This document shows, one piece after another, positions 25,151-46,721 of a stretch of 64,000 bases of DNA. The notes beneath the pieces are model-generated. The model was not told the origin of the DNA. It saw only the letters and a program-made list of their open reading frames with translations, and made no database searches. The stretch covers positions 62,707-126,706 of the forward strand of contig JAPDFW010000135.1 in NCBI GenBank assembly GCA_028826165.1. The letters are read 5' to 3'. A program made the translations under genes and the position numbers. Origin of the DNA: Anaeramoeba ignava BMAN (Eukaryota; Protista; Anaeramoebae). The first letter of the stretch is position 1. Every line of letters begins with the position of its first letter.

Positions 25151-26925
25151 TTAATTTTGATTATTAAATTTGTTAATTAATAAATCAAATAAATTTGGAT
25201 TTGTTTGATTTAATTGAAAATAATCAATTCCAGTTTTAATTTCATCAATGATTTCTTGTGTAATTTGAATTTCATCTTTAATTTGATTTGAATAAATCCA
25301 ATATTCAAATATTTGAAATGATTTATTACTTAATTCACTATAATCTGTAACTTTATTAGATTTATCTTCAGTTACAGATAAAAACATTCCTCGATATAAT
25401 TCACTTCTCATTATTAATATTAATTTAGGAAATTTATATTGTTTTTCTTTTCTTTCAATTATAAAATCTTTTTCATTTTCATTTTCATTTAAATAAATTC
25501 TTTTCATTGTTTCTTCAATTTTTTCATTTGAATTTATAATTTCTTTAATTTCAGAATATAATTTTGGATTTATTATTCTGTTTGAATAAATCATTTCAAA
25601 TATTTGATTTGATTCTTTAATTGATTTTTTTGAAATAATTTCTTGAAGTTTTTCAATTTTGATTTTGATTTTGATCTTTTAATCTATATTTCAATATTAA
25701 TTTATGAGCTTTGATTATTTCTCCATTTTCGGTTTTAAATGAAATATCACAAAATTCTTTTCTTTCAAATAATTTTATCAAATCTTCTTCAAGATTGGAA
25801 AAAGGAGGAGGAGAATAATAAATAAATGAATTGTTAAATCCACAAGAAATATGATAATTAGGAATATTTTCATTAAATCTTAATTTAGGAAGTTCAATTT
25901 GAATTGGAATTGATTGCTTTAAATGACTATATCCAGTTCCTAATTGACCTGAATAATTATATCCAAATCCTATTAATTTCCCTTTGGAAGTTAAAATCAA
26001 AGTATGAGCATTTCCAACAGAAAAATCAAGAATATTATCATCATTTTCAAATAAAGATGATTTGATTTCAGTAAATTCATAAGTATTTTCATCTTTGCTA
26101 AGTCCATTAAATCCATAATTTCCACATGAATAAAGTTTTCTTTTTGGATTTTGATCTTGATTTTCATTTTCAATAAATGTTATTGAATGACCACCTCCAC
26201 ATTGAATATCAATTATTTTGCCTTTTGGAATATTTTGGATTTTGGTTAATTTTGTGATTTTTGTTTCTTGTTTTCTTGATTCTCCTAATCCAACTTGACC
26301 AAATCTATTATCGCCGCATCCAAATAATTCTTGATTTGAATTTAAAAGAAAAACACAATTTGAAGAGTTTCCTGAAAATATTTTAGAAACATTTTTCATC
26401 ATTAAAATTGGTTTTTGTGTATTTTTAAGTGTTTCAGAATCAAAACCAAGTTGACCAAATTGATTTGAACCAATTCCATAAACATTTTGATTTGAAGTTA
26501 ATAAGTAAATTGAATTTCTTCCAGAAACAACATCTTCGAATTATTCTATCATTTTTATCTTCAATTAATGATGAAATATTGATAAATTCATTTGGATTAT
26601 TTGGATTAATATCTAAACCTTTGGCAAATACATTTCCTTCTATTGTTAAAATAGCTTCATTGTGAACACCAACAGTTACTTTTTGAATATTTTCTTCAAT
26701 TTGAATTTTTGAAGGATTTTGTTTTGAATATTTTTCATTTAAATATTCTATTGCTTTTCCATTTTGAAAAAGGAAAATTGTTGAAAAATAACATGATGAA
26801 ATTTGTTTAATTTGTTTTTCATTTTCATTTTCAAATTTAAATTGAATTGGTTTTGTTATTTTTTCTGATTCATTTTTTATAAGTTTTGGTTCGTCATTTT
26901 TACCACAAAATAAACAATCATTCAT
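25151..26925 (-). CDS. RCC1-repeat propeller + tandem BTB protein, copy A (frameshifts ~26537 and ~25655)
   Basis: GxNxxGQLG and FSVGxxHTLIL repeats; BTB motifs EFCDISF..AHKLIL and FPKLILIMRSELYRGMF. Collinear with the intact copy 44931-46721. Confidence 0.85.
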
Positions 26926-27059
26926 TTTTGAAAAGAAAAAAATGAAAAAAATAATTTTTGGAATTTTAATTTTAATTTTAATTTTAATTTTAATTTTGAT
27001 TTTAATTTTAATTTTAATTTTAATTTTAATTTTGATTTTAATTTTGATTTTGATTTTAA

Positions 27060-27410
27060 TTTTAATTTTGATTTTGATTATTAAATTTGTTAATTAATAA
27101 ATCAAATAAATATTTGAAATGATTGTTTGATTTTAATTTATCATTGAAAATAATCATTCCCCAATTTGAATTTCATCAATTATTTCTTGTGTAATTTCAA
27201 TTTCATCTTTAATTTGATTTGAATAAATCCAATATTCAAATATTTGAAATGATTTATTACTTAATTCACTATAATCTGTAACTTTATTAGATTTATCTTC
27301 TGTTACAGATAAAAACATTCCTCGATATAATTCAATTCTCATTATTAATATTAAATTTAAGGAAATTTTATATATTGTTTTTCTTTTCTTTCAATTATAA
27401 AATCTTTTAA
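27060..27410 (-). pseudogene. Degenerate 3' fragment (second BTB) of an RCC1-BTB gene
   Basis: ELYRGMFLSVTEDKSNKVTDYSE with multiple indels; upstream part replaced by AT-only sequence. Confidence 0.8.
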
Positions 27411-28199
27411 TTAATTTATTTCAAAAATGGAATAAAGAATATTAAATAATTAAATTTAAAATTAATTTTATTTTATATATTTTATTAATATTTTTATTTA
27501 AAATAATATAAAATTATTCTCAATAATTTAATAAAATTAATAAGAAAATTGAAATATTTTAATAAATATAAATATTTAATTTTAATAATATTTAATAATA
27601 ATTTAATTTAGATTTTAATTTTTATTTTAATTTTATATATATTTATTTTTAATATTTAATAATAATTTATTATATTAATATTTTTAATTATTTATTATTT
27701 CAATTTTAATTATAATAAAATATATTAAAAATAAAATTAAAAATTAAAAAATTTTAAATAAATTGAATTTAACATGATTGAATAAGATAAACTTTCTAAA
27801 AAAATAATTTACTAATTATTCTATTTTTGATTTTGATTATAATTTATTAATATTTAAATATTAATTAATAATAAATTTTATTTGATTTTTTTATTTTAAC
27901 ATTTTAATTAATGAATTTAAATTTAATTATTATTAATTTCTATTTTCAATTTTTATTTTTATTTATTATATTAAAAATATTCAATTTTTAAAATTTATTA
28001 TTTTTTTTTTTTGGATTATTTTTATTAATTAAATTTTTAATAAATATTTTAAATTAAAATTAAATTATTTAAAATTAAATTTGTTTTTTATTTATTATTT
28101 TAAAGAAATTAATTTGATTAAAATTAAATTAAAATTGAATTAAATTTTGAAAAAAAAAATTAAAAAAAAAAGTTTGATTTTCTTATTATTAATTAATTT

Positions 28200-29768
28200 T
28201 TAAATGAAATAAGATTCAAGTTCATCAACAACCCATTTATCATAAGAACCAGCTAAATAACTTCTAGCTTCATTTGATTGATAAGTAATTCCATTAGGTA
28301 GATTATAACATATACCAAAATTTGAATAACCAGGTTGTAAATTAGAACCTAAAATAAAATCATTAAAATGTGGACCATAACTTAAACCAGAATAAATTGC
28401 ACTATTTTGTTTATATGTAAACTTTGCAGGTATTCTATCCCCTTTATCATTTCTTAATGAAAAAATAAATGCATTTGAATCATTAATCCGTTCTCCATTT
28501 GCTGATTTAAATCCAACTTGAGTAAAACCTCCAAAAATAAAATTATCTTTTGTTTTGATAATAACTAATGTTTTTCCTTTCCCATCAACTGCTTTATGCC
28601 AATTTTGAGAATTAAATCCATCTCTTTTTGCTGAAAATCCTTTTTTCATTTTAGAAAAAAAATCATTATCATTTATCCATTCTTGTAATTTCTTAACATA
28701 TTCTTCTTCTGTAATAATTCTTGTTTCTGAAAATTGAGGAAAATTCTTTTTGATTGGTTCCAATTTCTTTTGTAATTCAAATTCTTTTTCATATTCATCA
28801 AAAACAGGTTTCATTTTCTCAACTTCTTTCTTCCATTTATCTTCAATTTCAATTTTCATTTGTTGATTTTCTTTCTCTTTATTTTCAATTTCTTTTTGAT
28901 TTTCTTGAATAACTTTGTTTTGAATATCAACTAAAAAAGATTTAGGAAAAAAATCAAATTGTTTTAATTTATCAAAATCTTGTTTTGAAATTGAATCTTT
29001 ATCAAATAATGAAAAAAAAGAATGAAATAATCTTTTCTTTTCAATTCCCTTTTCTTTTTCTTTCTCTTTTTCTTTCTTTCCTTTTAATCTCTTATTTCTT
29101 TTTTCAATCCAATTATTTAAAAATTGAAAAAAATCAAATTGAAAAATTTCTTTTTTTTCTTGTTTAAATTGAATAAATTTGATAATTTCTTCTTTAGTTA
29201 AATTGAATAAATTTTCATTATTTTGAATTTGGGAAAAATTTTGATTTATTAATTCAAAACATTTTATTTCAATTTCATTTGAATTTAAATTTCGATTTTG
29301 GAATAAAAATTGGAAAAAATTTGAATAATTAATTGAATTTAAAATTTTTTTTTGAATAATTTCTTTCAATAAATTTAATTTAAAATAAATTGAAATTTCT
29401 AATAATTGGATAAGATTTTCTTGATTTTCAAAAGAAATATTTCCATAATAAATATAACTCAAAATTGATTCCATTTCTTTTTTATTAAATTGTTTTAAAA
29501 AAATCTTATCAATATCGTTTTCTCCTCTTAAAAACTCATTAAAAAAAGGAGATCTTGAAGATAAAATTGATTTATGAACTTTAATTTCAAAATTATTTGA
29601 TTTATTCTCAACAAAAATTGAAAAATCATTAAATGAATTTCCATTTAAAAGGTTTGAATAATCTTTAATTAAATTTTTTGTTACTTTTTTTTCTAAATTT
29701 TTCATTTCATTTTCATTTTCATTTTCATTTGCATTTTCAATTTGGTTATTATTATTATTATTATCCAT
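28200..29768 (-). CDS. BTB + coiled-coil + TLDc protein
   Basis: FNDFSIFV..IKVHKSILSSRSPFF (BTB); FSAKRDGF..WHKAVDGKGKTLVIIKT..FIFGGFT..DSNAFIFSL (TLDc). Confidence 0.9.
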   Translation of the reverse strand: MDNNNNNNQIENANENENENEMKNLEKKVTKNLIKDYSNLLNGNSFNDFSIFVENKSNNFEIKVHKSILSSRSPFFNEFLRGENDIDKIFLKQFNKKEMESILSYIYYGNISFENQENLIQLLEISIYFKLNLLKEIIQKKILNSINYSNFFQFLFQNRNLNSNEIEIKCFELINQNFSQIQNNENLFNLTKEEIIKFIQFKQEKKEIFQFDFFQFLNNWIEKRNKRLKGKKEKEKEKEKGIEKKRLFHSFFSLFDKDSISKQDFDKLKQFDFFPKSFLVDIQNKVIQENQKEIENKEKENQQMKIEIEDKWKKEVEKMKPVFDEYEKEFELQKKLEPIKKNFPQFSETRIITEEEYVKKLQEWINDNDFFSKMKKGFSAKRDGFNSQNWHKAVDGKGKTLVIIKTKDNFIFGGFTQVGFKSANGERINDSNAFIFSLRNDKGDRIPAKFTYKQNSAIYSGLSYGPHFNDFILGSNLQPGYSNFGICYNLPNGITYQSNEARSYLAGSYDKWVVDELESYFI

Positions 29769-30294: not shown

Positions 30295-32086
30295 TTAATT
30301 TTGATTATTAAATTTGTTAATTAATAAATCAAATAAATTTGGATTTGTTTGATTTAATTGAAAATAATCAATTCCAGTTTCTAATTCTTCAATAATTTCT
30401 TGTGTAATTTGAATTCCATTTTTGATTTGATTTGAATAAATCCAATATTCAAATATTTGAAATGATTTATTACTTAATTCACTATAATCTGTAACTTTAT
30501 TTGAAGTATCTTCTGTTACAGATAAAAACATTCCTCGATATAATTCACTTCTCATTATTAATATTAATTTAGGAAATTTATATTGTTTTTCTTTTCTTTC
30601 AATTATAAAATCTTTTTCATTTTCATTTTCATTTAAATAAATTCTTTTCATTGTTTCTTCTATTTTTTCATTGGAATTTATAATTTCTTTAATTTCTAAA
30701 TATAATTTTGGATTTATTAATTGTTTGAATAAATCATTTCAAATATTTGATTTGATTCTTTAATTGATTTTTTTGAAATAATTTCTTGAAGTTTTTCATT
30801 TTGATTTTGATTTTGATTTTGATTTTGATTTAATCTATATTTTAATATTAATTTATGAGCTTTGATTATTTCTCCATTTTTGGTTTTAAATGAAATATCA
30901 CAAAATTCTTTTCTTTGGAATAGTTTTATCAAATCTTCTTCAAGATTGGAAAAAGAAGGAGGAGAATAATAAATAAATGAATTGAAAGTTCCACAAGAAA
31001 GATGATAATTGGAAATATCTTCATTAAATCTTAATTTAGGGAGTTCAATTTGAATTGGAATTGATTGACTATTTGTATTTCCAGTTCCTAATTGACCTGA
31101 ATAATTATATCCAAATCCAATTAATTTTGAATTGGAAGTTAAAATCAAAGTATGAGAATTCCCAACAGAAAAATCAAGAATATTATCATCATTTTCAAAT
31201 AAAGATGATTTGATTTCAGTAAATTCATTTGTATTTTCATTACGATTTTTGCCAAGTCCATTAAATAGATAATCTCCACATGAATAAAGTTTTCTTTTTG
31301 GATTTTCATTTTCATTTTCATTTTCAATCAACATTATTGAATAATAAAATGAAGGTTTAATATCAATTATTTTGCCTTTTGGAATATTTTGGATTTTGGT
31401 TAATTTTCTTATATATGTTTCTTTTCTTCTTGATTCTCCTAATCCAAGTTGACCATAGAAATTTTCACCGCATCCAAATAATTCTTGATTTGAATTTAAA
31501 AGAAAAACGCAATCTGAAGAATCTCCTGAAAATATTTTAGAAACATTTTTCATCATTAAAATTGGTTTTTCTGTTTTTGGAAGTGTTTTATATTCAAAAC
31601 CAAGTTGACCATATTCATTTGAACCAATTCCATAAGCATTTTGATTTGAAGTTAATAAGTAAATTGAATTATTTCCAGAAACAACATCTTCAATTATTCT
31701 ATCATTTGTATCTTCAATTAATGATGAAATATTGATAAATTCTTTTGGATTATTTGGATTAATATCTTTTCCTTTTGCAAATACATTTCCTTCTATTGTT
31801 AAAATAGCTTCGTTTGCATAACCAACAGATACTTTTTGAATATTTTCTTCAATTTGGATTTCTTCAGGATTTGAATCATTTCCTCTTAAATATTCCATTG
31901 CTTTTCTATTTTTAAAAAGGAAAATTGTTGAAAAACCTCCTGATGAAATTTGTTTAATTTGTTTTTCATTTTCATTTTGATTTTCATTTTCAAATTTAAA
32001 TTGAATTGGTTTTGTTATTTTTTCTGGTTCATTTTTGATAAAAGAATTGGATAATTATTTAAACCAAAAAATAAAATTTCATTCAT
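30295..32086 (-). CDS. RCC1-repeat + tandem BTB protein, copy B (frameshifts ~32040 and ~30718)
   Basis: ATG at 32086 (MNEILFFG); collinear with copy D. Confidence 0.85.
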
Positions 32087-32171
32087 TTTTGAAAAGAAAA
32101 AAAATGAAAAAAATGAAATCCATTTTTCTTTTTTCTTTTCAAAAAAAATTTCCTTTTCAAAAAAAAATTGA

Positions 32172-32945
32172 ATGGAATTTCCCAAATGGATTTTCGAAAA
32201 ACAAACAATAATTGAAAATACTCCAAGCAGAAAAGAAGGGATTGATTTTGAAACAGAGTTGAATGAACGAGAAGAAACAAGCATTTTCATATTGACATTA
32301 GGCAAACTACTTGATCTGAACGAAATCATCATTTGCACATCACAATATTATTTCCACAGAGTTTTCCTGAAGTATTCTTTCAACAAAGAAGACAGTAATC
32401 AAGCTCGTATGATGGCTGCAGGATGTGTTCTCTTAGCATCAAAGATTCATGAATGTGCGAAAAAAACAAGAGATATAATTAATTGTTACCATTTCATCAT
32501 CACTGGAGGTCAACAGATTCTCGAAATTGGGGACCACTTTCATAAACTTCGCGCAGATCTTGTCTTGGCAGAATCAAGAGTTCTGAGAGCTTTGTGTTTT
32601 GATCTTGATATTGTTGTTCCGAATGTTTATTTGCTTCATTTTTCAAAAAGCCTTTCTTTATCGCAATCTACATTCAAAATCGCTTCAAAATTGCTGAATG
32701 ATTCAATGACTTCCATACTTTGTTTACTTTGTACCCCTGTAGAAATCGCTTGTGGTTGCATACATCTTGCTTCAAAAATTTCAGACAAAGAAATACCCTT
32801 TCCATGTTGGTACGAGGTTTTTGGTGTTGATACAAACAAGGTTGTTTTTGTAGTTTCTGAAATAATGTCCCTCATCTCGAAATCAAATGAACAAAATTTC
32901 CACAATTTGAATGAAAATCAAAATGAAAATTTAAAGAAAAATTAA
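32172..32945 (+). CDS. Transcriptional cyclin (cyclin L/Q-like)
   Basis: TSQYYFHR, AAGCVLLASKIHE..KTRDIIN, AESRVLRALCFD, and a second cyclin fold IACGCIHLA..WYEVF. Confidence 0.8.
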   Translation: MEFPKWIFEKQTIIENTPSRKEGIDFETELNEREETSIFILTLGKLLDLNEIIICTSQYYFHRVFLKYSFNKEDSNQARMMAAGCVLLASKIHECAKKTRDIINCYHFIITGGQQILEIGDHFHKLRADLVLAESRVLRALCFDLDIVVPNVYLLHFSKSLSLSQSTFKIASKLLNDSMTSILCLLCTPVEIACGCIHLASKISDKEIPFPCWYEVFGVDTNKVVFVVSEIMSLISKSNEQNFHNLNENQNENLKKN

Positions 32946-33029: not shown

Positions 33030-34898
33030 ATGTCAAATCAAAACAATAATCAAAATAATAATCAAAATGAAAATGAACCAAGATCATTCATAATTGGTTT
33101 GTTTGGACTTGATGGATCAGGCAAATCACATTTCACAATTCAACTTCTTCAACACACCTTTATAGAAGAATATGATCCAACAATAGAAGACAGTTACAGA
33201 AAGCAAATAGAATTCCAAAACGAAAAATTTAACGTTGAGATTTATGATACAACTAGTATGGAAGAAGAACATACTATTTTCACTCCAGAATACAAAATGG
33301 GGTTATGTGGTGGATTTATTATTATGTATTCAATCACAAATCGGGAAAGTTTTGAATTTATTAATTATCTTCTCGAAAAAATGATAAAAGCCAAAAATCC
33401 TGATCCTTTTCCTGTTATTATTGTTGGAAATAAAACTGATTTGGAAAGTGAAAGAAAAGTTCCAAAAAAAGAAGCTGAAGCTTTTTGTAAAGAAAAAAAA
33501 ATACCATTTGTGGAATTAACTTGTCGTGATTTTCAACAAGTTAAATCAGTTGTTGTTCAAATATGTAAATTGATGAAAAATTGGGATCATATTGTTGAAA
33601 TGGAAAAAAGAAAAAAGAAAAAGAAATGGTTAAGGAAATTATTAGTTCCCAAAAAGGAATGTGAATTACCTGATCAATTTACTCTTCCTTCAATTGATAT
33701 TCAACCAAGCTCTTTCCAATTTGATTGCGATAAGATTTTCCAAGATAAAATCAATACCGATGTTAAATTTAGTTTTGTTGATAATTCAAACAATCAAGGT
33801 TATTCATCATTTGATGCTCATCAAGCTATTCTTGCTTCAAGATGCTTTACATTTGGTAAAATTTTCAGAGGATTAAAAGAAAACAAACTTGAAGAAGTTC
33901 AACAAACTTGCAACAATGCGAAATTAAAATTGATCGAAAATAAAGGAGAAATACTTACTCTTTCAACTGAATATTTCTCAATTCAATCTTTTTATTCAAT
34001 GATTAGATTTTTATATTCAGCAATTATTGATGAAGAAGTGAAAAAAAGTGTTAAATTATCAAATGATTTACTTTCAGTTGCAGAAATTTTCAAAATTGAT
34101 ACTTTGAAAAATATTATGAATAAGAATATTTCTCTTTTAAAAAATCAAAATCAAAATCAAAATCAAAATGAAATATTAAAAGAAATTTCAGATTTACTTT
34201 CAAATGAAATGATAACAATCTCAAATAGATTTGCAATGCTTCTTAGAAAATCGCCATTCAGTGATTTCAGAATTATAATCAAAGAAGATGAAAATGCAAG
34301 AGAAAGAAGATTCTTTGTTCATTCGCCAATTCTTTCTCAAAGATGCAAATATTTTCAATTAGTTCTTCGAAATGAAATGATGGAAAAAAAGAAAGAAGAA
34401 ATATTACTTTCTGATATTAGTTTTGATTCCTTTTTACTTGCTATTGAATATATTTATTCAGATAGATTCTTGCCACCAAATGTCACTTCAGCAAAACAAA
34501 CCCAAAATACAAAACAAATTATTCAAACTAATAAAATTATGTTGGAACTTCTTATTATTTGTGATTATTTCCAACTTCCAAGACTCCATCAATTATGTCA
34601 AAAGGATCTAATGGAAAATCTTCATGAAGATATGCTTGTTTTTGCTTTGAATGTTGCAAACCAATGTAATGCTCCAATTCTAGAAGAATTTTGTATGATT
34701 CAAATTGGCAAAAATTTCCAAAAATTCAAAAACGATCCTCAATTTACAAATTATTTAGATCAAGAACAAAAAGATCAAATTAAAAAATATCAATATCCTC
34801 CTAAAAATTATATTAAATATCACAAGAAATTTAAAGTTAAATTAGCAAAGAAATTTGGACTTATTGAAAAAGAAGATGAAAGATTAAAGAAAAAATAA
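33030..34898 (+). CDS. Ras-like GTPase domain + two BTB domains (RhoBTB-like architecture)
   Basis: GLDGSGKS, YDPTIEDSYRKQ, NKTD; BTBs DAHQAILASRC and VHSPILSQRCKYF; C-terminus YPPKNY resembles the RhoBTB tail. Confidence 0.88.
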   Translation: MSNQNNNQNNNQNENEPRSFIIGLFGLDGSGKSHFTIQLLQHTFIEEYDPTIEDSYRKQIEFQNEKFNVEIYDTTSMEEEHTIFTPEYKMGLCGGFIIMYSITNRESFEFINYLLEKMIKAKNPDPFPVIIVGNKTDLESERKVPKKEAEAFCKEKKIPFVELTCRDFQQVKSVVVQICKLMKNWDHIVEMEKRKKKKKWLRKLLVPKKECELPDQFTLPSIDIQPSSFQFDCDKIFQDKINTDVKFSFVDNSNNQGYSSFDAHQAILASRCFTFGKIFRGLKENKLEEVQQTCNNAKLKLIENKGEILTLSTEYFSIQSFYSMIRFLYSAIIDEEVKKSVKLSNDLLSVAEIFKIDTLKNIMNKNISLLKNQNQNQNQNEILKEISDLLSNEMITISNRFAMLLRKSPFSDFRIIIKEDENARERRFFVHSPILSQRCKYFQLVLRNEMMEKKKEEILLSDISFDSFLLAIEYIYSDRFLPPNVTSAKQTQNTKQIIQTNKIMLELLIICDYFQLPRLHQLCQKDLMENLHEDMLVFALNVANQCNAPILEEFCMIQIGKNFQKFKNDPQFTNYLDQEQKDQIKKYQYPPKNYIKYHKKFKVKLAKKFGLIEKEDERLKKK

Positions 34899-34901
34899 TT
34901 T

Positions 34902-35018
34902 TTATTTTAATTTATTTTGATTTTCAAATTTAAATTGAATTGGTTTTGTTATTGAATTTGGTTCATTTTTGATAAATTTTGGTTCTTGATTTGAACCAAA
35001 AAATATAATTTCATTCAT
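34902..35018 (-). pseudogene. Truncated 5' end (38 codons) of another RCC1-BTB gene
   Basis: Translates as MNEIIFFGSNQEPKFIKNEPNSITKPIQFKFENQNKLK*, the family N-terminus, broken at the EN/QN repeat. Confidence 0.85.
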
Positions 35019-36214: not shown

Positions 36215-36427
36215 TTTTGGAAAGATGAAAAAAATGAAAGAAAAAAATGAATTTTAATTTTAATTTTAATTTTAATTTTGATTTTAATTTTAATTTTAAT
36301 TTTAATTTTAATTTTAATTTTAATTTTAATTTTAATTTTAATTTTGATTTTAATTTTAATTTTAATTTTGATTTTAATTTTAATTTTGATTTTAATTTTA
36401 ATTTTAATTTTGATTTTAATTTTGATA

Positions 36428-38219
36428 TTAATTTTGATTATTAAATTTTTTAATTAATAAATCAAATAAATTTGGATTTGTTTGATTTAATTGAAAATAA
36501 TCAATTCCAATTTTAATTTCATCAATAATTTCTTGTGTAATTTGAATTTCATTTTTGATTTGATTTGAATAAATCCAATATTCAAATATTTGAAATGATT
36601 TATTACTTAATTCACTATAATCTGTAACTTTATTAGAAGTATCTTCAGTTACAGATAAAAACATTCCTCGATATAATTCACTTCTCATTATTAATATTAA
36701 TTTAGGAAATTTATATTGTTTTTCTTTTCTTTCAATTATAAAATCTTTTTCATTTTCATTTTCATTTAAATAAATTCTTTTCATTGTTTCTTCAATTTTT
36801 TCATTGGAATTTATATTTTCTTTAATTTCAGAATATAATTTTGGATTTATATTCTATTTGAATAAATCATTTCAAATATTTGATTTGATTCTTTAATTGA
36901 TTTATTTGAAATAATTTCTTGAAGTTTTTCAATTTGATTTTGATTTTGATTTTGATTTTGATTTAATCTATATTTCAATATTAATTTATGAGCTTCAATT
37001 ATTTCTCCATTTTCTGTTTTAAATGAAATATCACAAAATTCTTTTCTTCTAAATAGTTTTATCAAATCTTCTTCAAGATTGGAAAAAGAAAGAGCAGAAT
37101 AATAAAAAAATGATTTTTCATTTCTACAAGAAATATGATAATTAGAAATATTTTCATTAAATCTTAATTTAGGAAGTTCAATTTGAATAGGAATTGATTG
37201 ACTATTTGTATCTCCAGTTCCTAATTGACCAAATTCATTATTCCCAAATCCAATTAATTTTGAATTAGAAGTTAAAATCAAAGTATGCAGATTTCCAACA
37301 GAAAAATCAAGAATATCATCATCATTTTCAAATAAAGATGATTTGATTTCAGTAAATTCATAAGTATCTTCATTTTTGCCAAGTCCATTGTATAGAGAAT
37401 ATCCACATGAATAAAGTTTTCTTTTTGGATTTTCATTTTCATTTTCATTTTCAATCAACATTATTGAAAAATTAAATCCAGATTGAATATCAATTATTTT
37501 GCCTTTTGGAATATTTTGGATTTTGGTTAATTTTCTTATATATGTTTCTTTTTTTCTTGATTCTCCTAATCCAACTTGACCAGAATTATTATATCCACAT
37601 CCAAATAATTCTTGATTTTGAATTTAAAAGAAAAACATGATTTGAAGTATTTCCTGAAAATATTTTAGAAACATTTTTCATCATTAAAATTGGTTTTTCT
37701 GTTTCTTCAAGTGTTTCATAATCAAAACCAAGTTGATCATAGTGATTTGAACCAATTCCATAAGCATTTTGATTTGAACTTAATAAGTAAATTGAATTAT
37801 TTCCAGAAACAACATCTTCAATTATTCTATCATTTGTATCTTCAATTAATGATGAAATATTGATAAATTCATTTTGGATTTTTGGATTGATATTTCTTCC
37901 TTTGGCAAATACATTTCCTTCTATTGTTAAAATATTTTCATTTTCTTCACCAACAGTTACTTTTTGAATATTTTCTTCAATTTGGATTTTTATCAGGATT
38001 TTGTTTTGAATCTTCTTGATCTAAATATTCTATTGCTTTTCCATTTTTAAAAAGGAAAATTGTTGATAAATAACTTGATGAAATTTGTTTAATTTGTTTT
38101 TCATTTTCATTTTCATTTTCATTTTCAAATTTAAATTGAATTGGCTTTGTTATTTTTTCTGGTTCATTTTCATCCAAAACAACAAAATCATTTCTTCCAA
38201 AAAATAAACAATCATTCAT
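36428..38219 (-). CDS. RCC1-repeat + tandem BTB protein, copy C (frameshifts ~37985, ~37617, ~36848)
   Basis: Collinear with copy D across three 1-nt indels. Confidence 0.85.
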
Positions 38220-38292: not shown

Positions 38293-41200
38293 TTAAAAAT
38301 ATTTTTGTGTTTCCAATTCTTTTAATCGATTATTAAATTGATTAAATTGACTTAATTGATAAAAATCTTCTGTGTCATTTAATTCTTGAATAATTTTTGT
38401 TAAATCTTTTTTTAAATTTAAATTTAAATTTAAATCAAATTCTCCAAAATAAAAGTAATGAATAAGTTGTTCAAGACTTCCTTTACTTTTCCCACTATAA
38501 TCTTTAACAGAATTTGAATCATCTTGAACATTCAAAAACATTTGTCTAAATAAATTTGATCTTAAAATTAAAATCAATTTATGAACTTTGATTTCTGAAG
38601 AATCATCACAAATAATTTTGAAATCTTTTTCAATCTTTTTCCAAATAAAGATTAACAAAATCTTTTTAATTCCTGATTCATCTTTTTGTTTCCGGATCCA
38701 ATTTTTATCAAATCCTAATTCTTGTGAAATGATTTGAATTTTCTTTTCATTTTGAATTTGGGAAAAATTATCTGAACTTGTTAAATATTCTTGAAATAAT
38801 TTTTGAGAATCAGAATCATCAAAATTAAATTGATTTGATTTCCAATAAAATGAAAAGAATGGATGTTTTGACTCAATTAAATTCCATTCATCTTTTTGAA
38901 ATTGATTCAAATCAAGATTAGAAATTGGATCAATCATTCCAGTATAAATGAAAATCAAGAAAGGAATAACTTGATTTTCAGGTTTTGATGAGAAAACTTC
39001 TTGAATTTTTGTTAAAATTGAATGATCATTATCAAATCTCATCAATAAAATTAGTTTATGAACTTTGATATTTCCATCTAAATGATTTATTGTGAAATCA
39101 CAAAATTCTTGTCTCAAAAATAGATTAAATAAATCAATTTGCAAATTTTTGGAAAGAATTGGGAATTCAAATCTGAAAAATTCACTTTCAATAAATGGAC
39201 AAGGTTTATTTTCTCTAATATATCCAATTGCAAAATCTTGCATAATATCTTTTTCCTTAATTTGATTTGGGCTCAGTTCAGAAATTCCTGAATGTGATAA
39301 TGATATATTATAAAGCAAATTAGAAGAGATAATACTGATAAATTTTGAATTCTTTGTGGATAAAATAACGAATCTATCAGTTTCCAAAGGAGTAATAACT
39401 GAAGGAAGACTCCAGACAAATTGAATTTTATCTCCAACAATTTTTCTATTCAAAATTTTGATTCCCACAAAACTAGTTGGTTCAATTATGATTGGTGATT
39501 GACAAAGAATAATTTTAGAATAAGAATAAGAATAATATCCAATAATAAATTCTTCCTCGATCATTCCACCTCCAATTTGTATTTTGATTTCTACTTCTCC
39601 TTTTTTTTCACATTTCTCATTTTTGTAATAAACTTGAAAATATTTTGGTGCTTCTTTTTCTTTAGATTGAAGTTGTGATTTAAATAAAATTATTTGATCA
39701 TTTTGATGAGGTTCATAATTATTTGATAATTCCCATGATACTTTTATTGTTTCTCCAATCTTTGTTTTTTCTGGAGATGATTTAATTATTCCTCCTTCTA
39801 ATGGAAGAACTTCAATTTCTTCACTTTTTGCAAAAGGTTTATATTTGTATTCACTTGTATAATATCTAAATTCAAATATTTGATTTTCTTCTGTAATATA
39901 ATTTCTAATATCAAATGTTAATTTTCCCTTTTTTTTATGCATTGGAATATATTGATAAGTTAAACCAGGAGTAGTTGTAGAATCTTTCAAAAATAAAGCA
40001 ATACGACCGAAATAATTTGCTTGATAATATTCAGGTATCTCCCATTCAACATCAATTAATTCTCCAAATTTAATTTCATTTTTGGAAACTGATAATTTGA
40101 AATCTTTTCTATTAATCTCTTTCACTTTAATTTCTTCACTTTTCATTAATGATATTCTTCCATAAAATTTAATATATCTAAATTCAAATATTTGATTCTC
40201 ATCTTTAATATATTCATTAATATCAAATGTAAATTTTCCTTTTCTTGCTAAATTTGAATTATCTTTAATAATTAAAGAGTTATCAATTCGAGGAAATTTC
40301 AAAAATAAAACAATCCGATCTCCATGAATTGGCTGATAATATTCAGGTAATTCCCATTCAACATCAATTGATTCTCCAAATTTAATTTCATTTTTGGAAA
40401 CTAATAATTTGAAATCTTTTTTATCAAATTCTTTCACTTTAATTTCTTCACTTTTTGTTATTGGGTTTTTTTGATCTTTTGGATAATATCTAAATTCAAA
40501 TATTTGATTTTCTTCTGTAATATAATTTCCAATATCAAGTGTAAATATTCCTTTTTTTGCTAAATTTGAAGTAAATTTCCTAAATAAATAATTATTGATT
40601 GGAGAATCTTTCAAAAATAAACCAATCCAATCTTGTTTATTTGAATGATAATATTCAGGAAATTCCCATTCAACATCAATTGATTCTCCAAATTTAATTT
40701 CATTTTTGGAAACTAATAATTTGAAATTTTTTTTATCAAATTCTTTCACTTTAATTTCTTCACTTTTTGCTATTGGGTTTTTTTGATCTTTTGGATAATA
40801 TCTAAATTCAAATATTTGATTTTCTTCTGTAATATAATTTCCAATATCAAATCTTAATATTCCTTTTTTTGTTAAATTTGAAGTATTTTTGTCAACTAAA
40901 GAATTATTGAATGGAGAATCTTTCAAAAATAAACCAATCCAATCTTGTTCATTTGATTGATAATATTCAGGAAATTCCCATTTAACATCAATTGATTCTC
41001 CATATTTAATTTCATTTTTGGAAACTAATAATTTAAAGATTTTAAATTCATCAACTCCAAAATGAGAAGAAGTAAACAATACTTTTTTTTCGTTTGAAGT
41101 TTTGAGATGAGAAATGTATTTAACAATAAATAATTGGGCTTCATTTTCATTTGTATTTTCCTTTTTCAAATCATCATCCAATTTGAATTCAATCATTCCA

Positions 41201-42363
41201 ATTCTTGAAACTCTATCATTATGTTTTTCTATCAAAGGTTTTTGTGATAAATCATTTAAATTTGAATGAGAATCATAATAAAAAAGTGAAATTGAATCTG
41301 AAATGTTTGGTTTGTATTCATCAGGTAATTTGAATTGAATTTGAATTGGTAAACCAAATGTAGGTCTTTTTGCTATAATTTCAATTCCATTATTTTCCAA
41401 GAATTGGATTTGGAATGGTTTGCTGACACATTGGCTTTTATCATCACATGAAAAAAATCTAAATTGTAAATTGTCAAGAAAATTAATTGTTTGATAATCT
41501 TTTGTTTGGAAAATAATTGAATCTTTTCTATTTGTTTGATGAATATATCTTATTTCAATATATTGTGAACTTATTGAGTTTTCATAAAATAATCCAATCC
41601 GACTTGTTTCAGATATCTCAAAATCTTCAGGAAACTCCCATGAAACTTCAATGGATTCTCCAAATAAAAACTTTTCTTTAGAGAGAATAAGATGATTTTC
41701 TGGAATTTTGGATTTAATAATAAAAGGTTCACTTTCTGCTATTGTGTCTTCATTAACTGCAATGTATCTAATTACAAATTCTTCATTAGTTTCATTTCTC
41801 ATGCAAGATCCAGTATTAAAAGTTGCTGTTCCATTCATTGTTGCATTGTGATTAGCCACATAATCTAAATAAGAATTATAAAATGGTTCATCTTTGGGAA
41901 ATAAGCAAATCAAATCCCAACGTCTTAAAGAATAACCATCACAACCATCATCTCCATTGGGTATAAAATTAACAGGTAATTTCCAAGTTGTTTTAATTTC
42001 TTTTTCATTAATTTCATCAATAGTAATTATTTTTTCAAAAGGAATAATTTCAAAAACTTCAGAAACAAGAATTGATTTGGATTTATTTTCAGGTAAATAT
42101 CTAATTTGTAATTTGTTCTTCCATATTTCCACATAATTGACATTAAGAAATGTTGTTCCTTCTAATTGAGAATTTGAATTGTTTTTATAAGTAAAGTAAA
42201 TTTCATTTTTTTCTTTTGTAGCGTCAAAAAGTGCAATTTTATCATTTGATTTTGGTTGAAATTGTTCAGGAAGTTTCCATTCAACAATAATTTCATTTTG
42301 ATTTGTTAATTTAACTTTTTTGTTTTCATAATTTTTAACTTGAATAAAATATTTTTGTTCCAT
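38293..42363 (-). CDS. Array of about 10 SKICH/Ig-like domains + tandem BTB (1356 aa)
   Basis: Repeated V.W.......D(W/R)I.LF......F.FRY units; C-terminal LFLRQEFCDF..VHKLIL and VHKLILILRSNLFRQMF. Confidence 0.78.
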   Translation of the reverse strand: MEQKYFIQVKNYENKKVKLTNQNEIIVEWKLPEQFQPKSNDKIALFDATKEKNEIYFTYKNNSNSQLEGTTFLNVNYVEIWKNKLQIRYLPENKSKSILVSEVFEIIPFEKIITIDEINEKEIKTTWKLPVNFIPNGDDGCDGYSLRRWDLICLFPKDEPFYNSYLDYVANHNATMNGTATFNTGSCMRNETNEEFVIRYIAVNEDTIAESEPFIIKSKIPENHLILSKEKFLFGESIEVSWEFPEDFEISETSRIGLFYENSISSQYIEIRYIHQTNRKDSIIFQTKDYQTINFLDNLQFRFFSCDDKSQCVSKPFQIQFLENNGIEIIAKRPTFGLPIQIQFKLPDEYKPNISDSISLFYYDSHSNLNDLSQKPLIEKHNDRVSRIGMIEFKLDDDLKKENTNENEAQLFIVKYISHLKTSNEKKVLFTSSHFGVDEFKIFKLLVSKNEIKYGESIDVKWEFPEYYQSNEQDWIGLFLKDSPFNNSLVDKNTSNLTKKGILRFDIGNYITEENQIFEFRYYPKDQKNPIAKSEEIKVKEFDKKNFKLLVSKNEIKFGESIDVEWEFPEYYHSNKQDWIGLFLKDSPINNYLFRKFTSNLAKKGIFTLDIGNYITEENQIFEFRYYPKDQKNPITKSEEIKVKEFDKKDFKLLVSKNEIKFGESIDVEWELPEYYQPIHGDRIVLFLKFPRIDNSLIIKDNSNLARKGKFTFDINEYIKDENQIFEFRYIKFYGRISLMKSEEIKVKEINRKDFKLSVSKNEIKFGELIDVEWEIPEYYQANYFGRIALFLKDSTTTPGLTYQYIPMHKKKGKLTFDIRNYITEENQIFEFRYYTSEYKYKPFAKSEEIEVLPLEGGIIKSSPEKTKIGETIKVSWELSNNYEPHQNDQIILFKSQLQSKEKEAPKYFQVYYKNEKCEKKGEVEIKIQIGGGMIEEEFIIGYYSYSYSKIILCQSPIIIEPTSFVGIKILNRKIVGDKIQFVWSLPSVITPLETDRFVILSTKNSKFISIISSNLLYNISLSHSGISELSPNQIKEKDIMQDFAIGYIRENKPCPFIESEFFRFEFPILSKNLQIDLFNLFLRQEFCDFTINHLDGNIKVHKLILLMRFDNDHSILTKIQEVFSSKPENQVIPFLIFIYTGMIDPISNLDLNQFQKDEWNLIESKHPFFSFYWKSNQFNFDDSDSQKLFQEYLTSSDNFSQIQNEKKIQIISQELGFDKNWIRKQKDESGIKKILLIFIWKKIEKDFKIICDDSSEIKVHKLILILRSNLFRQMFLNVQDDSNSVKDYSGKSKGSLEQLIHYFYFGEFDLNLNLNLKKDLTKIIQELNDTEDFYQLSQFNQFNNRLKELETQKYF
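39800..41037 (-). repeat. Four in-frame ~312-bp tandem repeats (104 aa Ig-like domains)
   Basis: FKL.VSKNEIK.GE.IDV.W starts at ~41037, ~40725, ~40413 and ~40101. Confidence 0.92.
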
Positions 42364-42404
42364 TTTGAAATGAAAAAAATGAAAATTAATTTTTGCTTTT
42401 CAAA

Positions 42405-42731
42405 AATGAAAAAGATTTTATAATTGAAAGAAAAGAAAAACAATATAAATTTCCTAAATTGATATTAATAATGAGAAGTGAATTATATCGAGGAATGTTT
42501 TTATCTGTAACAGAAGATAAATCTAATAAAGTTACAGATTATAGTGAATTAAGTAATAAATCATTTCAAATATTTGAATATTGGATTTATTCAAATCAAA
42601 TTAAAGATGAAATCCAAATTACACAAGAAATAATTAATGAAATTCAAATTGGAATTGATTATTTTCAATTAAATCAAACAAATCCAAATTTATTTGATTT
42701 ATTAATTAAAAAATTTAAAAATCAAAATTAA
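42405..42731 (+). pseudogene. Inverted 3' fragment (second BTB) of an RCC1-BTB gene
   Basis: NEKDFIIERKEKQYKFPKLILIMRSELY...KNQN*; no ATG start; opposite orientation to the other copies. Confidence 0.85.
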
Positions 42732-42773
42732 TTTTTTCATTTTTTTCAAAACAAAAAACAAAAACAAACCCAA

Positions 42774-43514
42774 ATGGATAATAATAATAATAACCAAACT
42801 GAAATTGTCGAGATTTACAAAAAGGAAAACCAAGATTTAAAAAAGGAAATCGAAGATTTAAAAAGGGAAATTGAGAAAATGAAACCAGTTTTTGATAAGT
42901 ATCGAGAACAATATCAAAAAGATTTGGAATATCAAAAACAAATAAAAGAATTGAGAAAACCATTTTCAAATTCGGAAATTATTCAAGATATTGAATATAT
43001 CCAGACATTAAAAGAATGGATAAATGATAATGATTTCTTTTCCAAAATGAATTTGGGATTTTCAGCAAAAAAAGATGGATTTTCTGCTCAAAATTGGCAT
43101 AAAGCAGTTGATAATAAAGGAAAAACATTAGTTATTATTAAAACAAAAGATAATTTTATTTTTGGAGGATTTACTCAAGTTGGATGGCAAGGAAAGAAAG
43201 GATACATTAGTGATTCAAATGCATTTATTTTTTCATTAAGAAATGATAAAGGGGATAGAAATCCTCAAAAATTTACAATTAAATATGGAAAAGAACAATA
43301 TGCAATTGTGGATGATTCGGAAAATGGACCTATTTTTGGATATTCTTGGAGGGATTGGAATTTAAAATCTAATTTACAACCTGGTTATTCAAATTTTGGA
43401 GAAAGTTACAATCTCCCTAAAGGAATTAAATATGGAACAGATCTCGCACAAACTTATTTATCTGGTTCTTATACTTCATCTGTCGTTGTTGAACTTGAGA
43501 CTTATTTCATTTAA
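42774..43514 (+). CDS. Coiled-coil + TLDc protein (BTB-less relative of 28200-29768)
   Basis: Shares MDNNNNNQ.E, EKMKPVFD and EWINDNDFFSKM with that gene; TLDc motifs. Confidence 0.88.
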   Translation: MDNNNNNQTEIVEIYKKENQDLKKEIEDLKREIEKMKPVFDKYREQYQKDLEYQKQIKELRKPFSNSEIIQDIEYIQTLKEWINDNDFFSKMNLGFSAKKDGFSAQNWHKAVDNKGKTLVIIKTKDNFIFGGFTQVGWQGKKGYISDSNAFIFSLRNDKGDRNPQKFTIKYGKEQYAIVDDSENGPIFGYSWRDWNLKSNLQPGYSNFGESYNLPKGIKYGTDLAQTYLSGSYTSSVVVELETYFI

Positions 43515-43625
43515 AAACTTTTCTTTCTTTTTTTTTTCAAAATTCCATTTTATTTTTCATTTACTTTCAATCAAATGAAATGAAAAAAATGAATAAGAAA
43601 CAAATCATTTAATTTTTTTTAATTT

Positions 43626-44768
43626 TCAAAAATATGTTCGATGAATAATTGTTGGTCCAATTTCATTATATTCATACAATGAAATACATCGGTCTTGAAA
43701 AGTAGAAAATGAAGCCAACATTGATCCACCAATCCAAGATGAATATTTTCTTTCTTCAGGTGCAATAATTTTAACTTTCATTCCATTTTTTTCTGATAAT
43801 TTAGATATTTCTTTTTTAAATCTTTGTTTGATTCCAGGAAACATTGAAGTTCCTCCAGATAAAATAATATTAGAAAATAAATCTTTTTTGATATCCTCAT
43901 CACATTTCATAATTGAATCATAAATCATTTCATGAATTCCTTTTTCCTCTATTTCAATCAAAGAAGGTTGAAATAACGCTTCTGAACATCTGAATCTTTC
44001 TTTTCCAATTTTGATAATTCGACCATCAAATATTTCATAATTTTTTTCAATTAATTTTTCTTCTTGATTAATTTCTTTATCAAAATCCAAAGCAACATAT
44101 CCAAATTTTTCTTTAATATCTTTAATAATTGCAATTTCAGCAGTTGTAGTCAAAGAATATCCTTTTTCTGTTAACATTTGTAATAAATAATCATTTAAAT
44201 GTTTTCCTCCCAAATTTAATTTATTGATTGAATTTAATAAAACAGAGCTTTCATAAACAGGAACAACTTGAATAAAACCACCTCCCATTTCAACAACAAC
44301 TCCTATTGATCTTCTTGTTGATATTAATGATAAAACAGATTGATTTTCAAGATCGAAAAAAGGAGTACAAAATGTTTCAAACATAATTTGAGTAATTTTC
44401 TCTTTATGTATTTTTGAATTGAAAACACTATCCATTAATAAAGCAGGATGTTCTTCAGGAGCAACTCTTAATTCATTATAAAAACAATGATGCCATATTT
44501 TTTCCATATCATCCCAATTTATTACTGTTCCATTTTCAATCGGATATTTCATTCTTAATATTCCCCTTTTTGCAATTGCTTCATCTCCAATATATGCATC
44601 TTTTTGTCCCATTCCTACCATTACTCCCATATATGCTGGTCTTCCAACTATTGATGGAATAATTGATCTTGGTTTTTCATCTCCTGCAAATCCTGATTTT
44701 GAATAAGTTGTTCCATTATCAAATATTACAATTAGATTTTCTTCCAATGTATAATCACCAAAACTCAT
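43626..44768 (-). CDS. Divergent actin / actin-like protein, copy 2
   Basis: 380 aa, nearly identical to copies 1 and 3. Confidence 0.93.
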
Positions 44769-44930
44769 TTTTTGGAAAGATGAAAAAAAATGAAAGAAAA
44801 AAATGAATTTTAAATTTTAATTTTAATTTTAATTTTAAATTTAATTTTAATTTTAATTTTAATTTTATTTTTAATTTTAATTTTAATTTTAATTTTAATT
44901 TTGATTTTAATTTTATTTTTAATTTTGATT

Positions 44931-46721
44931 TTAATTTTGATTATAATTTTGATTATTAAATTTTTTAATTAATAAATCAAATAAATTTGGATTTGTTTGA
45001 TTTAATTGAAAATAATCAATTCCAATTTTAATTTCATCAATAATTTCTTCTGTAATTTGGATTTCTTTTTTAATTTGATTTGAATAAATCCAATATTCAA
45101 ATATTTGAAATGATTTATTACTTAATTCACTATAATCTTTAACTTTATTAGAAGTATCTTCTGTTACAGATAAAAACATTCCTCGATATAATTCACTTCT
45201 CATTATTAATATTAATTTAGGAAATTTATATTGTTTTTCTTTTCTTTCAATTATAAAATCTTTTTCATTTTCATTTAAATAAATTCTTTTCATTGTTTCT
45301 TCAATTTTTTCATTTGAATTTATAATTTCTTTAATTTCAGAATATAATTTTTGATTTATTATTCTATTTGAATAAATCATTTCAAATATTTGATTTGATT
45401 CTTTAATTGATTTTTTTGAAATAATTTCTTGAAGTTTTTCAATTTGATTTTGATTTTGATTTTGATTTAATCTATATTTCAATATTAATTTATGAGCTTC
45501 AATTATTTCTCCATTTTTGGTTTTAAATGAAATATTACAAAATTCTTTTCTTCTAAATAATTTTATCAAATCTTCTTCAAGATTGGAAAAAGAAAGAGGA
45601 GAATAATAAAGAAATGAATTTAAATATCCACAAGAAAGATGATAATTGAAAATATTTTCATTAAATCTTAATTTAGGAAGTTCAATTTGAATTGGAATTA
45701 ATTGATTTATTGTATCTCCAGTTCCTAATTGGCCAAATTCATTATTTCCAAATCCAATTAATTTTGGATTGGAAGTTAAAATCAAACTATGCACATGTCC
45801 AACAGAAAAATCAAGAATATAATCATCATTTTCAAATAAAAATGATTTGATTTCAGTAAATTCATAAGTAAATTGATTTTTGCCAAGTCCATTAAATTGA
45901 TAATTTCCACATGAATAAAGTTTTCTTTTTGAATTTTCATTTTGATTTTCATTTTCAATCAACATTATTGAATGAGTATATCCACATTGAATATCAATTA
46001 TTTTGCCTTTTGGAATATTTTGGATTTTGGTTAATTTATCAATTTTTTCTTCTTCTTTTTTTGATTCTCCTAATCCAAGTTGACCAGAATTATTCCAACC
46101 GCATCCAAATAATTCTTGATTTGAATTTAAAAGAAAAACATGATTTGAAGAATTTCCTGAAAATATTTTAGAAACATTTTTCATCATTAAAATTGGTTTT
46201 TCTGTTTTTGGAAGTGTTTCAGAATCAAAACCAAGTTGATCATATTCATTTGAACCAATTCCATAAACTATATGATTTGAAGTTAATAAGTAAATTGAAT
46301 TAGCTCCAGAAACAATATCTTGAATTATTCTATCATTTGTATCTTCAATTAATGATGAAATATTGATAAATTCTTTTGTATTATTTGGATTAATATTTAT
46401 TCCTTTTGCAAATATATTTCCTTCTATTGTTAAAATAGCTTCATTTCCATAACCAACAGTTACTTTTTGAATATTTTCTTCAATTTGGATTTTTTGAGGA
46501 TTTTGTTTTGAATCTTCTTCATCTAAATATTCTATTGCTTTTCCATTTTTAAAAAGGAAAATTATTTCAAAATATCCTGTTGAAATTTGTTTAATTTGTT
46601 TTTCATTTTCATTTTCATTTTCATTTTCAAATTTAAATTGAATTGATTTTGTTATTTTATTTGGTTTATTTTTAAAAAATTTTGGATATTTATTTTTACC
46701 AAAAAATAAAATTTCATTCAT
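44931..46721 (-). CDS. RCC1-repeat + tandem BTB protein, copy D (intact, 596 aa)
   Basis: Uninterrupted ORF with RCC1 repeats and two BTB domains. Confidence 0.92.
   Translation of the reverse strand: MNEILFFGKNKYPKFFKNKPNKITKSIQFKFENENENENEKQIKQISTGYFEIIFLFKNGKAIEYLDEEDSKQNPQKIQIEENIQKVTVGYGNEAILTIEGNIFAKGININPNNTKEFINISSLIEDTNDRIIQDIVSGANSIYLLTSNHIVYGIGSNEYDQLGFDSETLPKTEKPILMMKNVSKIFSGNSSNHVFLLNSNQELFGCGWNNSGQLGLGESKKEEEKIDKLTKIQNIPKGKIIDIQCGYTHSIMLIENENQNENSKRKLYSCGNYQFNGLGKNQFTYEFTEIKSFLFENDDYILDFSVGHVHSLILTSNPKLIGFGNNEFGQLGTGDTINQLIPIQIELPKLRFNENIFNYHLSCGYLNSFLYYSPLSFSNLEEDLIKLFRRKEFCNISFKTKNGEIIEAHKLILKYRLNQNQNQNQIEKLQEIISKKSIKESNQIFEMIYSNRIINQKLYSEIKEIINSNEKIEETMKRIYLNENEKDFIIERKEKQYKFPKLILIMRSELYRGMFLSVTEDTSNKVKDYSELSNKSFQIFEYWIYSNQIKKEIQITEEIIDEIKIGIDYFQLNQTNPNLFDLLIKKFNNQNYNQN

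Follow-up and report, generated by a model that had tools for sequence, protein, structure and literature searches.

Between positions 25151 and 46721 of a window of Anaeramoeba ignava BMAN DNA lie four related copies, A to D, of a gene that joins an RCC1-like propeller to BTB domains; the window is the whole stretch of 64,000 nucleotides analysed here, C136:62707-126706 of the assembly that we searched (42.8 Mb, 147 contigs). The locus raises the question of what a family of proteins built in this way would bind, and to what end. Based on our analysis we propose, with a probability of about 0.6, that the copies belong to an A. ignava family of more than 1,100 near-identical genes, intron-less and in tandem arrays, encoding substrate receptors of Cullin-3 RING ligases, whose variable propeller face constitutes a germline repertoire of binding specificities. 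The variable-face design is well supported; the Cullin-3 link, for which we rely on modelling, is probable, and we infer that the variable face binds ligands.

The intact gene among the four is copy D (44931-46721, minus strand), a single intron-less open reading frame (ORF) of 596 amino acids, which tblastn returned as a stop-free match of 100%; exact-sequence look-ups of D and of P0121 retrieved no record. Pfam matches RCC1, RCC1_2, WD40_RLD and, twice, BTB in its product, with RCC1 repeats over residues 69-366: PF00415 scored 89.3 bits (cut-off 21.7), PF13540 62.5 bits (cut-off 22) and the BTB entry PF00651 30.9 bits in two stretches (cut-off 20.5), and PF25390, at 139.5 bits, fell under its cut-off of 150. 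Ankyrin repeats had no Pfam match in copy D, and NCBIfam gave no match. In the AlphaFold2 model (mean predicted local distance difference test score, pLDDT, 87.9; predicted template modelling score 0.74) seven four-stranded blades are followed by two BTB-like alpha/beta units, and the top Foldseek matches of this model were the RCC1-like domains of RPGR, RCC1, HERC2, WBSCR16 and UVR8 (E 4e-25, template modelling score by target 0.7-0.8), with a sequence identity to RCC1 of 16-20% in these alignments. The original prediction for this locus, an RCC1-like propeller linked to BTB, agrees with all three analyses, which resolve it into seven blades and two BTB domains. The propeller occupies residues 1-380 (45582-46721, minus strand) and the BTB region residues 381-596 (44931-45581, minus strand), with BTB2 at approximately 485-596.

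Copies A, B and C had been treated as genes too, a view that we had to abandon, as each of them carries two or three frameshifts and only D is a complete ORF. Copy A (25151-26925, minus strand) is a full-length pseudogene as assembled, recovered by tblastn as three pieces in three frames, with a +1 shift near 26537 (an extra G outside a homopolymer) and another near 25660 (an extra A within an A run). Copies B and C, likewise pseudogenes as assembled, were delimited by tblastn and pairwise alignment; an insertion near 32040 shifts B (30295-32090, minus strand) by +2 and a deletion near 30721 by -1, and C (36410-38219, minus strand) is shifted by +1 near 37992, by +1 near 37619 and by -1 near 36850. 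The shifts that fall within A runs could be assembly errors; the others lie outside such runs. Translating A to C codon by codon in register with D recovers every one of the variant loop strings first noticed in these copies. Amino-acid identity among A to D is 92-96% in the BTB regions versus 77-81% in the propellers, and 33 of the 35 sites that are hypervariable across the family vary among these four copies, in line with the early impression that strands and BTB domains are nearly identical and that changes concentrate at the loops.

Variable sites on one face of the propeller

Per-site entropy was calculated from the aligned proteins of 68 intact paralogues from other loci. Its median was 0.11 bit, and 35 sites reached at least 2.0 bits and 26 at least 2.4 bits, with as many as 15 different residues at one site. 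All 35 belong to the propeller, residues 1-380; the BTB region, where entropy is about zero, contributes none (Fisher p 1.6e-7). The observation that started this work is thus confirmed, and more strongly at the scale of the genome: the entropy of the genomic paralogues concentrates in the propeller loops far beyond chance; and as the same positions vary at 68 separate genomic loci, the objection that the variation is read-consensus noise is ruled out.

The hypervariable sites recur from blade to blade in three loops. The first, comprising the pair of residues that follow the Gly of a 'G-x-x-H' hairpin, accounts for positions 50, 91-92, 140-141, 191/193, 248-249, 309-310 and 366-367; the second, at the x positions of a 'G-x-N-x-x-G' motif, for 9/11/12, 108, 159, 209/211/212, 273/275/276 and 326/328; and the third, just before the first strand of a blade, for 21-22, 171, 225-226, 282 and 338-339. 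Both loops named in the original prediction are thus borne out, but its list was incomplete, as it lacked the third. The residues at these sites are distinctive: Tyr makes up 17.9% at variable sites versus 3.2% in the rest of the propeller (5.6-fold), Trp is enriched 32-fold, Arg 2.9-fold and Asp 2.4-fold, and Ile, Leu and Gly are depleted. The sites had been described as rich in Tyr, Phe and Trp, which is right for Tyr and Trp and wrong for Phe (1.1-fold, not enriched).

When the sites are assigned to the strands of the model, 13 fall in the turns between strands S2 and S3, 16 in the loops from S4 to the S1 of the next blade, and the remaining six sit at the ends of the flanking strands, either as the final residue of S4 or as the initial one of S1. 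Among the 94 residues of the S1-S2 and S3-S4 loops, which lie on the opposite face, none is hypervariable (Fisher p 3e-9). Since the S2-S3 and S4-S1 connections of an up-down four-stranded blade share one face, topology alone places all the variable sites on one face of the propeller.

It is the face by which UVR8 forms its dimer. In a HMMER alignment D 209/211/212 correspond to UVR8 W198/R200/Y201, 248/249 to W233/R234, 273/275/276 to W250/K252/Y253, 309/310 to W285/R286 and 326/328 to W302/K304, and D 339 corresponds to D315, the blade equivalent of D107. In UVR8, R286, D96 and D107 form salt bridges between the monomers, and R234 and R338 flank the chromophore tryptophans at the dimer interface (PMC5091643). 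The hypervariable sites therefore match the interface residues W285/R286 and R234 and, once the blade repeat is allowed for, the counterparts of D96 and D107. The comparison with the ligand-face loops of UVR8 that had been drawn from the letters holds, with all variable sites on that face rather than scattered over the structure.

Family size and a probable Cullin-3 link

A family-specific motif of 26 nucleotides from the propeller occurs 1,151 times in the genome and one of the same length from BTB2 1,354 times, and the reversed control patterns do not occur at all. The matches are grouped in tandem arrays with a spacing of about 2 kb, and at about 1.8 kb per copy the family takes up roughly 5% of the genome. 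Of 2,748 first-look candidates in a protein search of the organism's own genome, 73 were scored as full-length copies, at 83-86% identity, and 68 of the 70 best-scoring loci hold complete ORFs of 585-625 codons. Frame changes or stops break 10 of the 33 partly visible neighbours, as counted by hand from tblastn, so that the pseudogene fraction rests on these 33 partial neighbours and the window. We rejected the idea that in-frame TAA 'stops' reflect recoding or widespread pseudogenes: tblastn places these stops beyond residue 588, where the C terminus is variable; ORFs in the window end in TAA more often than in any other stop; and 68 of the 70 loci retrieved carry complete ORFs.

All close protein relatives are A. 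ignava entries, as are the more distant subfamilies of 34-42% identity, and 'btk-binding protein-related' is found among the public annotations of family relatives. The nearest protein of A. flamelloides is only 34% identical, indicating that the expansion is species-specific. The words RCC1 and BTB are absent from the main text of the genome paper, and the lateral gene transfer candidates in its supplements include only a few RCC1 entries and a few annotated 'BTK-binding protein-related' (PMC11550330). As far as size goes, the claim of an expanded family is supported: it is huge and private to one species, and its tandem arrays and broken neighbours speak of birth-and-death turnover.

The genome contains about eight cullin loci (at least eight), of which the one on contig C58 is best against human CUL3 (394 bits; CUL4B 342). 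Its product, P0272, has 736 amino acids, is annotated 'cullin-3a-related' and is present in the transcriptome-derived EukProt set. Among the cullin loci, L071-L078, there are tandem Cul1-like copies on C57, some loci are interrupted by stops or introns, and the ORFs of the two Cul4-like loci (L071 and L075) start and end with nearly the same sequence; the ubiquitin-ligase scaffold set of A. ignava itself looks expanded.

We asked a complex-prediction program to pair residues 372-596 of D with residues 1-240 of P0272, the public annotated protein, next to three controls. The D BTB region and Cul3 scored 0.69 versus 0.01 for the best control, although, as solved BTB-Cul3 complexes exist, this pass may reflect likeness to them; the mark that we used for the score is reached by 51 of 78 solved complexes and by 2 of 108 mismatched pairs. 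The runs agreed in at least 77% of contacts, with a partner pLDDT of at least 80. Predicted contacts join residues 510-531 and 566-572 of BTB2 to Cul3 42-59 and 109-121, stretches that we equate with helices H2 and H5, where BTB domains usually bind. BTB2 is thus predicted to dock on the H2/H5 helices of the species' own Cullin-3, and the proposed recruitment of Cullin-3 gains an orthologue in the genome and a modelled interface.

Many BTB proteins do not bind Cul3, and it is conceivable that the BTBs of this family only oligomerise, in which case its members would be multivalent binders or scaffolds, cytosolic agglutinin-like or sequestering, that recruit no ubiquitin ligase. In sequence the BTB region is indeed very divergent from the solved BTBs (best E 0.006, to KBTBD4). 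The predicted docking of BTB2 on H2/H5, far above the best control, and the occurrence of Cul3 both in the genome and in the EukProt set speak against such a role, which we regard as very unlikely.

Recombination, selection and possible targets

Among 192 informative nucleotide sites of the paralogues the mean r2, a measure of linkage disequilibrium (LD), was 0.086 within 10 nucleotides and 0.016-0.019 beyond, which is about 1/n, and 87% of site pairs fail the four-gamete test in that all four gametes are found. With LD near zero beyond 10 nucleotides and four gametes in so many pairs, the paralogues behave as a freely recombining population, by way of gene conversion or unequal crossing-over. 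The loci L039 and L057 form a mosaic pair, nearly identical over residues 113-246 and diverged on both sides. Under free recombination among paralogues a 'rate' estimated on a tree measures diversity.

The codon analyses have to be read accordingly. Counting methods (NG86/parsimony) gave a nonsynonymous rate (dN) of 0.83 and a synonymous rate (dS) of 0.34 at the hypervariable sites, and 0.07 and 0.09 in the scaffold. We set aside the resulting dN/dS (omega) of 2.0-2.5 at the hypervariable sites, as we judged it inflated about 2.5-fold by A+T bias: counting gave 0.81 for the scaffold and 0.38 for the BTB region, versus 0.34 and 0.14 by maximum likelihood (ML). Since the inflation is seen equally in scaffold and BTB counts, ML with F3x4 frequencies was preferred. 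The DNA of BTB2 is 97-98% identical in 40 copies.

Site models were fitted with our own GY94 code to the 68 sequences, keeping the FastTree topology and relative branch lengths fixed. M2a (log-likelihood, lnL, -25915.0) improved on M1a (lnL -26689.7) with a likelihood-ratio statistic of 1549, placing 7.7% of sites at omega 4.66; 40 sites had a posterior above 0.99, 39 of them in the propeller. Both models assume one synonymous rate for every site, an assumption that fails here. When 32 loop codons were set a priori from the motif and analysed in the 67 paralogues other than D, they evolved about 11-fold faster than the scaffold. The dN/dS above 1 originally expected at the loops holds under the single-synonymous-rate M2a; with a local synonymous rate the loop codons have an omega of about 1.0-1.3, and a dual-rate model fits better without values above 1; positive selection in the strict sense is unproven.

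Synonymous change is itself unevenly spread. On the tree it amounts to 6.1 per conserved codon beside a hypervariable codon, 4.3 at a distance of two, 3.5 at three to four and about 2.1 from five on, and the heterozygosity of codons for two-fold amino acids is 0.055 at hypervariable sites, 0.049 adjacent to them and 0.009 far away. Linked synonymous diversity thus peaks at or beside the hypervariable codons and decays within about four codons, a width similar to the range of LD; such narrow peaks are as expected for linked variation around a maintained polymorphism.

Raised synonymous diversity at and beside these codons would also follow from a targeted hypermutation or templated diversification of the loops, akin to diversity-generating retroelements (DGR) or to AID, and the preference of the dual-rate model for a site class that is 5-12 times faster points the same way. 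No hot spot is seen in the five youngest duplicate pairs: of their 104 amino-acid differences only 12 lie in the 35 sites, where about six are expected under uniform mutation, a count that rejects both an 11.6-fold hot spot (p 7e-12) and a 4.8-fold one (p 0.002). Moreover, the changes are not adenine-specific, as variation at the first two codon positions involves all four bases, and we consider a mutational mechanism of this kind exceedingly improbable. As typical paralogue pairs differ at 28 of the 35 hypervariable sites and recent duplicates lack a loop hot spot, the loop variants are old and have been retained while the scaffold was homogenised.

Such retention could be imagined without function. 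Genomic drift, in which unequal crossing-over amplified the copies within tandem arrays flanked by microsatellites, concerted evolution homogenised the scaffold and the loops are merely unconstrained, would leave most copies individually functionless. The local omega of about 1 at the loop codons fits this picture, as do the broken third of the copies, the intense conversion implied by LD near zero, and the most recent duplicates, whose 16-27 amino-acid differences are scattered and stand against 4-9 codons with only synonymous differences. Conversion tracts, on the other hand, would erase loop differences too, unless homogenised loops were selected against. Furthermore, all 68 best-scoring copies have kept a complete ORF of about 590 codons although stops arise easily in a genome of 80% A+T; the omega of 0.14 in the BTB region and 0.34 in the scaffold denotes constraint; the composition of the loops, with Tyr, Trp, Asp and Arg up and Ile and Leu down, is far from that of the rest of the protein; and the loops of the opposite face are equally exposed and have no hypervariable site. 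We therefore think drift quite unlikely. Selection for diversity is the best explanation for the persistence of the loop differences, and we infer that it maintains them.

Several points nevertheless weigh against reading the family as a repertoire of Cullin-3 receptors. The a-priori loop codons alone have an omega of 1.30 in IQ-TREE or 1.00 in our own code, and a three-class model that allows the fast class a separate synonymous rate outperforms M2a by 156-234 lnL units (lnL -25758.6 with omega fixed at 1 and -25680.9 with omega free); left free, the omega of the fast class is estimated at 0.34, in a class that also absorbs conserved codons with many synonymous changes. Pervasive recombination makes the single tree under all the codon models invalid. 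The 68 copies analysed are the best-scoring ones and hence biased to intact genes, and as about 30% of the neighbouring copies and three of the four window copies are broken, the family includes dead members. The transcriptome-derived EukProt source, although listed for more distant subfamilies, is named by none of the 120 best public members of the family. Finally, since BTB-Cul3 complexes have already been solved, the docking prediction speaks of likeness and not of binding.

On the Cullin-3 receptor reading, copies would be born by tandem duplication and about a third would decay into pseudogenes. The invariant BTB2 would dock on Cullin-3, and a target would be bound by one propeller face through three loops per blade, each paralogue presenting its own surface, rich in Tyr, Trp, Asp and Arg, on a scaffold that is constant elsewhere. 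Loop diversity is old standing variation that has survived pervasive gene conversion or recombination, by which the scaffold is made uniform and reshuffled.

The same design might serve endogenous targets, the family having diversified together with an expanded host family such as the small-GTPase and membrane-trafficking repertoire. RCC1-like domains classically bind small GTPases, and the closest folds are those of RCC1, RPGR and HERC. A RhoBTB-like Ras-BTB-BTB gene sits within the same cluster, and regulators of trafficking are greatly expanded in the Anaeramoeba genome (PMC11550330). More than 1,100 copies of about 85% identity that are private to one species are difficult to reconcile with such partners, and so are the paratope-like enrichment in Tyr and Trp and the near-random identity of residues, which are unlike one-to-one co-evolution with conserved partners. 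Endogenous targets are, in our view, unlikely.

That the targets are foreign proteins, of a symbiont, prey, a pathogen or a virus, is speculative. The original prediction went further and saw in the family a candidate immune system, and it is a tentative and rather doubtful extension that an 'anticipatory' germline repertoire of more than 1,000 cytosolic receptors feeds non-self proteins to Cullin-3 as a cell-autonomous immune system of a protist. In such a system each receptor would display about 20 hypervariable loops, selection would maintain their diversity and short-tract gene conversion would continually reshuffle it, possibly with pseudogenes as donors, and the bound proteins of symbionts, prey bacteria, intracellular pathogens or viruses would be passed to Cullin-3 for ubiquitination. 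The RCC1 propeller would then be a scaffold not known for that purpose.

Should the family indeed be a repertoire of Cullin-3 receptors, about 5% of the genome of a free-living protist would be devoted to ubiquitin-ligase receptors with variable surfaces, and the concept of rapidly diversifying Cullin adaptors, argued so far for nematodes and plants, would come to include a deep-branching metamonad and a recognition scaffold that is new. The family would also provide a tractable case of diversity that persists in a few loops of a family otherwise homogenised by gene conversion, and might bear on how Anaeramoeba handles its bacterial symbionts and prey. As a stable propeller in which about 35 surface positions can vary freely, the scaffold amounts to a natural binder library and is of possible interest for protein engineering.

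Neighbouring genes and known systems

In addition to the four copies the window contains three fragments of the family, giving as assembled one gene, three pseudogenes and three fragments at a composition of 80% A+T. By tblastn, a BTB2-only fragment with stops (27160-27354, minus strand) matches D residues 503-567 and an N-terminal fragment (34914-35018, minus strand) matches residues 1-35. The third fragment (42396-42728, plus strand) matches residues 482-592 at 92% identity and has a TLDc gene directly downstream: its ORF (42393-42731, plus strand) ends 43 nucleotides upstream of a same-strand TLDc gene of 246 amino acids (joint span 42393-43514), and the two may represent a chimeric or decayed BTB2-TLDc gene. 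Long hexanucleotide microsatellites of AAAATT/AAAATC units flank each copy, for example at 25000-25180 and 26960-27100, and may promote unequal crossing-over; at other loci many open frames were extended upstream by comparable repeat tracts.

The 25-47 kb region is a cluster of differing BTB-domain architectures. A BTB-TLDc gene of 522 amino acids lies at 28200-29768 (minus strand), and the RhoBTB-like gene at 33030-34898 (plus strand, 622 amino acids), which has a Ras/Roc GTPase domain and two BTB stretches, adjoins an apparent cyclin-like gene, judged from its translation (32172-32945, plus strand). At 38293-42363 (minus strand) an ORF of 1,356 amino acids encodes many tandem SKICH-like/HECW_N-like repeats of about 110 amino acids, visibly variable between repeats, followed by BTB domains that are 37% identical to those of the RCC1-BTB family. 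SKICH domains are found in the autophagy receptors NDP52/CALCOCO, and this ORF may encode another BTB-linked recognition protein.

Three nearly identical actin-family genes of 380 amino acids (35072-36214, 43626-44768 and 46774-47916, minus strand; the second, the one scanned, matches Pfam Actin at E 8e-111) are interleaved with the RCC1-BTB copies, and the two kinds of gene seem to have been duplicated jointly. Elsewhere in the window GC falls to 7% and 2.8% in the 2-kb bins 18001-20000 and 60001-62000; the region of 52-58 kb shows a strong positive GC skew (0.3-0.42) with a negative AT skew, and on the minus strand at about 54.6-58.0 kb there is an open frame of 1,109 codons that starts with Asn/Gln repeats.

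Among known systems, IBTK and RCBTB1/2, Cul3 adaptors of animals, share the order of an RCC1-like propeller followed by one or more BTB domains, and IBTK likewise has two. Unlike IBTK, copy D is devoid of ankyrin repeats and its BTB sequence is very divergent; IBTK and RCBTB1/2 are low-copy conserved animal genes, and the likeness noted here is one of architecture. UVR8 and BLIP-II share the RCC1 fold, the use of the same loop face for protein contacts and an aromatic-rich surface, and the hypervariable positions of A. ignava align with the Trp/Arg of the UVR8 GWRHT motif and with its interface Trp, Asp and Tyr positions. Each of these two proteins, in contrast, has one fixed specificity and no BTB or ligase link.

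HERC5 and HERC6 of vertebrates combine an RCC1-like domain with a HECT E3 ligase and are antiviral, and positively selected propeller residues set their antiviral specificity (PMC6002735). They resemble the A. ignava family in coupling an RCC1-like propeller to ubiquitin-like conjugation and differ from it in being single-copy, in carrying the E3 in the same chain and in having selection centred on blade 1, whereas the A. ignava proteins are predicted to recruit a ligase through BTB, vary in all seven blades and are diverse across paralogues rather than orthologues.

With regard to evolution, the MATH-BTB (BATH) and F-box adaptors, which reportedly underwent adaptive expansion in Caenorhabditis and in grasses and for which a role against pathogen proteins has been proposed, are likewise large lineage-specific families of Cullin-RING adaptors with a conserved cullin-binding module, a fast-evolving substrate domain and birth-and-death evolution. 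In A. ignava, unlike MATH-BTB, the recognition module is an RCC1 propeller and copies are roughly ten times as numerous, and unlike both families the variation is confined to about 35 sites, conversion keeps the scaffold about 92% identical in DNA, and the host is a free-living anaerobic metamonad.

The leucine-rich repeats (LRRs) of plant highly variable NLRs (hvNLRs) and the variable lymphocyte receptors (VLRs) of lampreys likewise carry Tyr-rich high-entropy sites on the solvent face of a repeat scaffold, and tandem clusters, pseudogenes and gene conversion are common to hypervariable receptor families shuffled by conversion. Fold and signalling output differ from those of hvNLRs and VLRs, and the likeness rests on the pattern of sites, not on function. 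Set beside these systems, the A. ignava family is new in using an RCC1 propeller as the scaffold that varies, in its scale, in restricting diversity strictly to about 35 sites of a single face, and in the lineage of its host.

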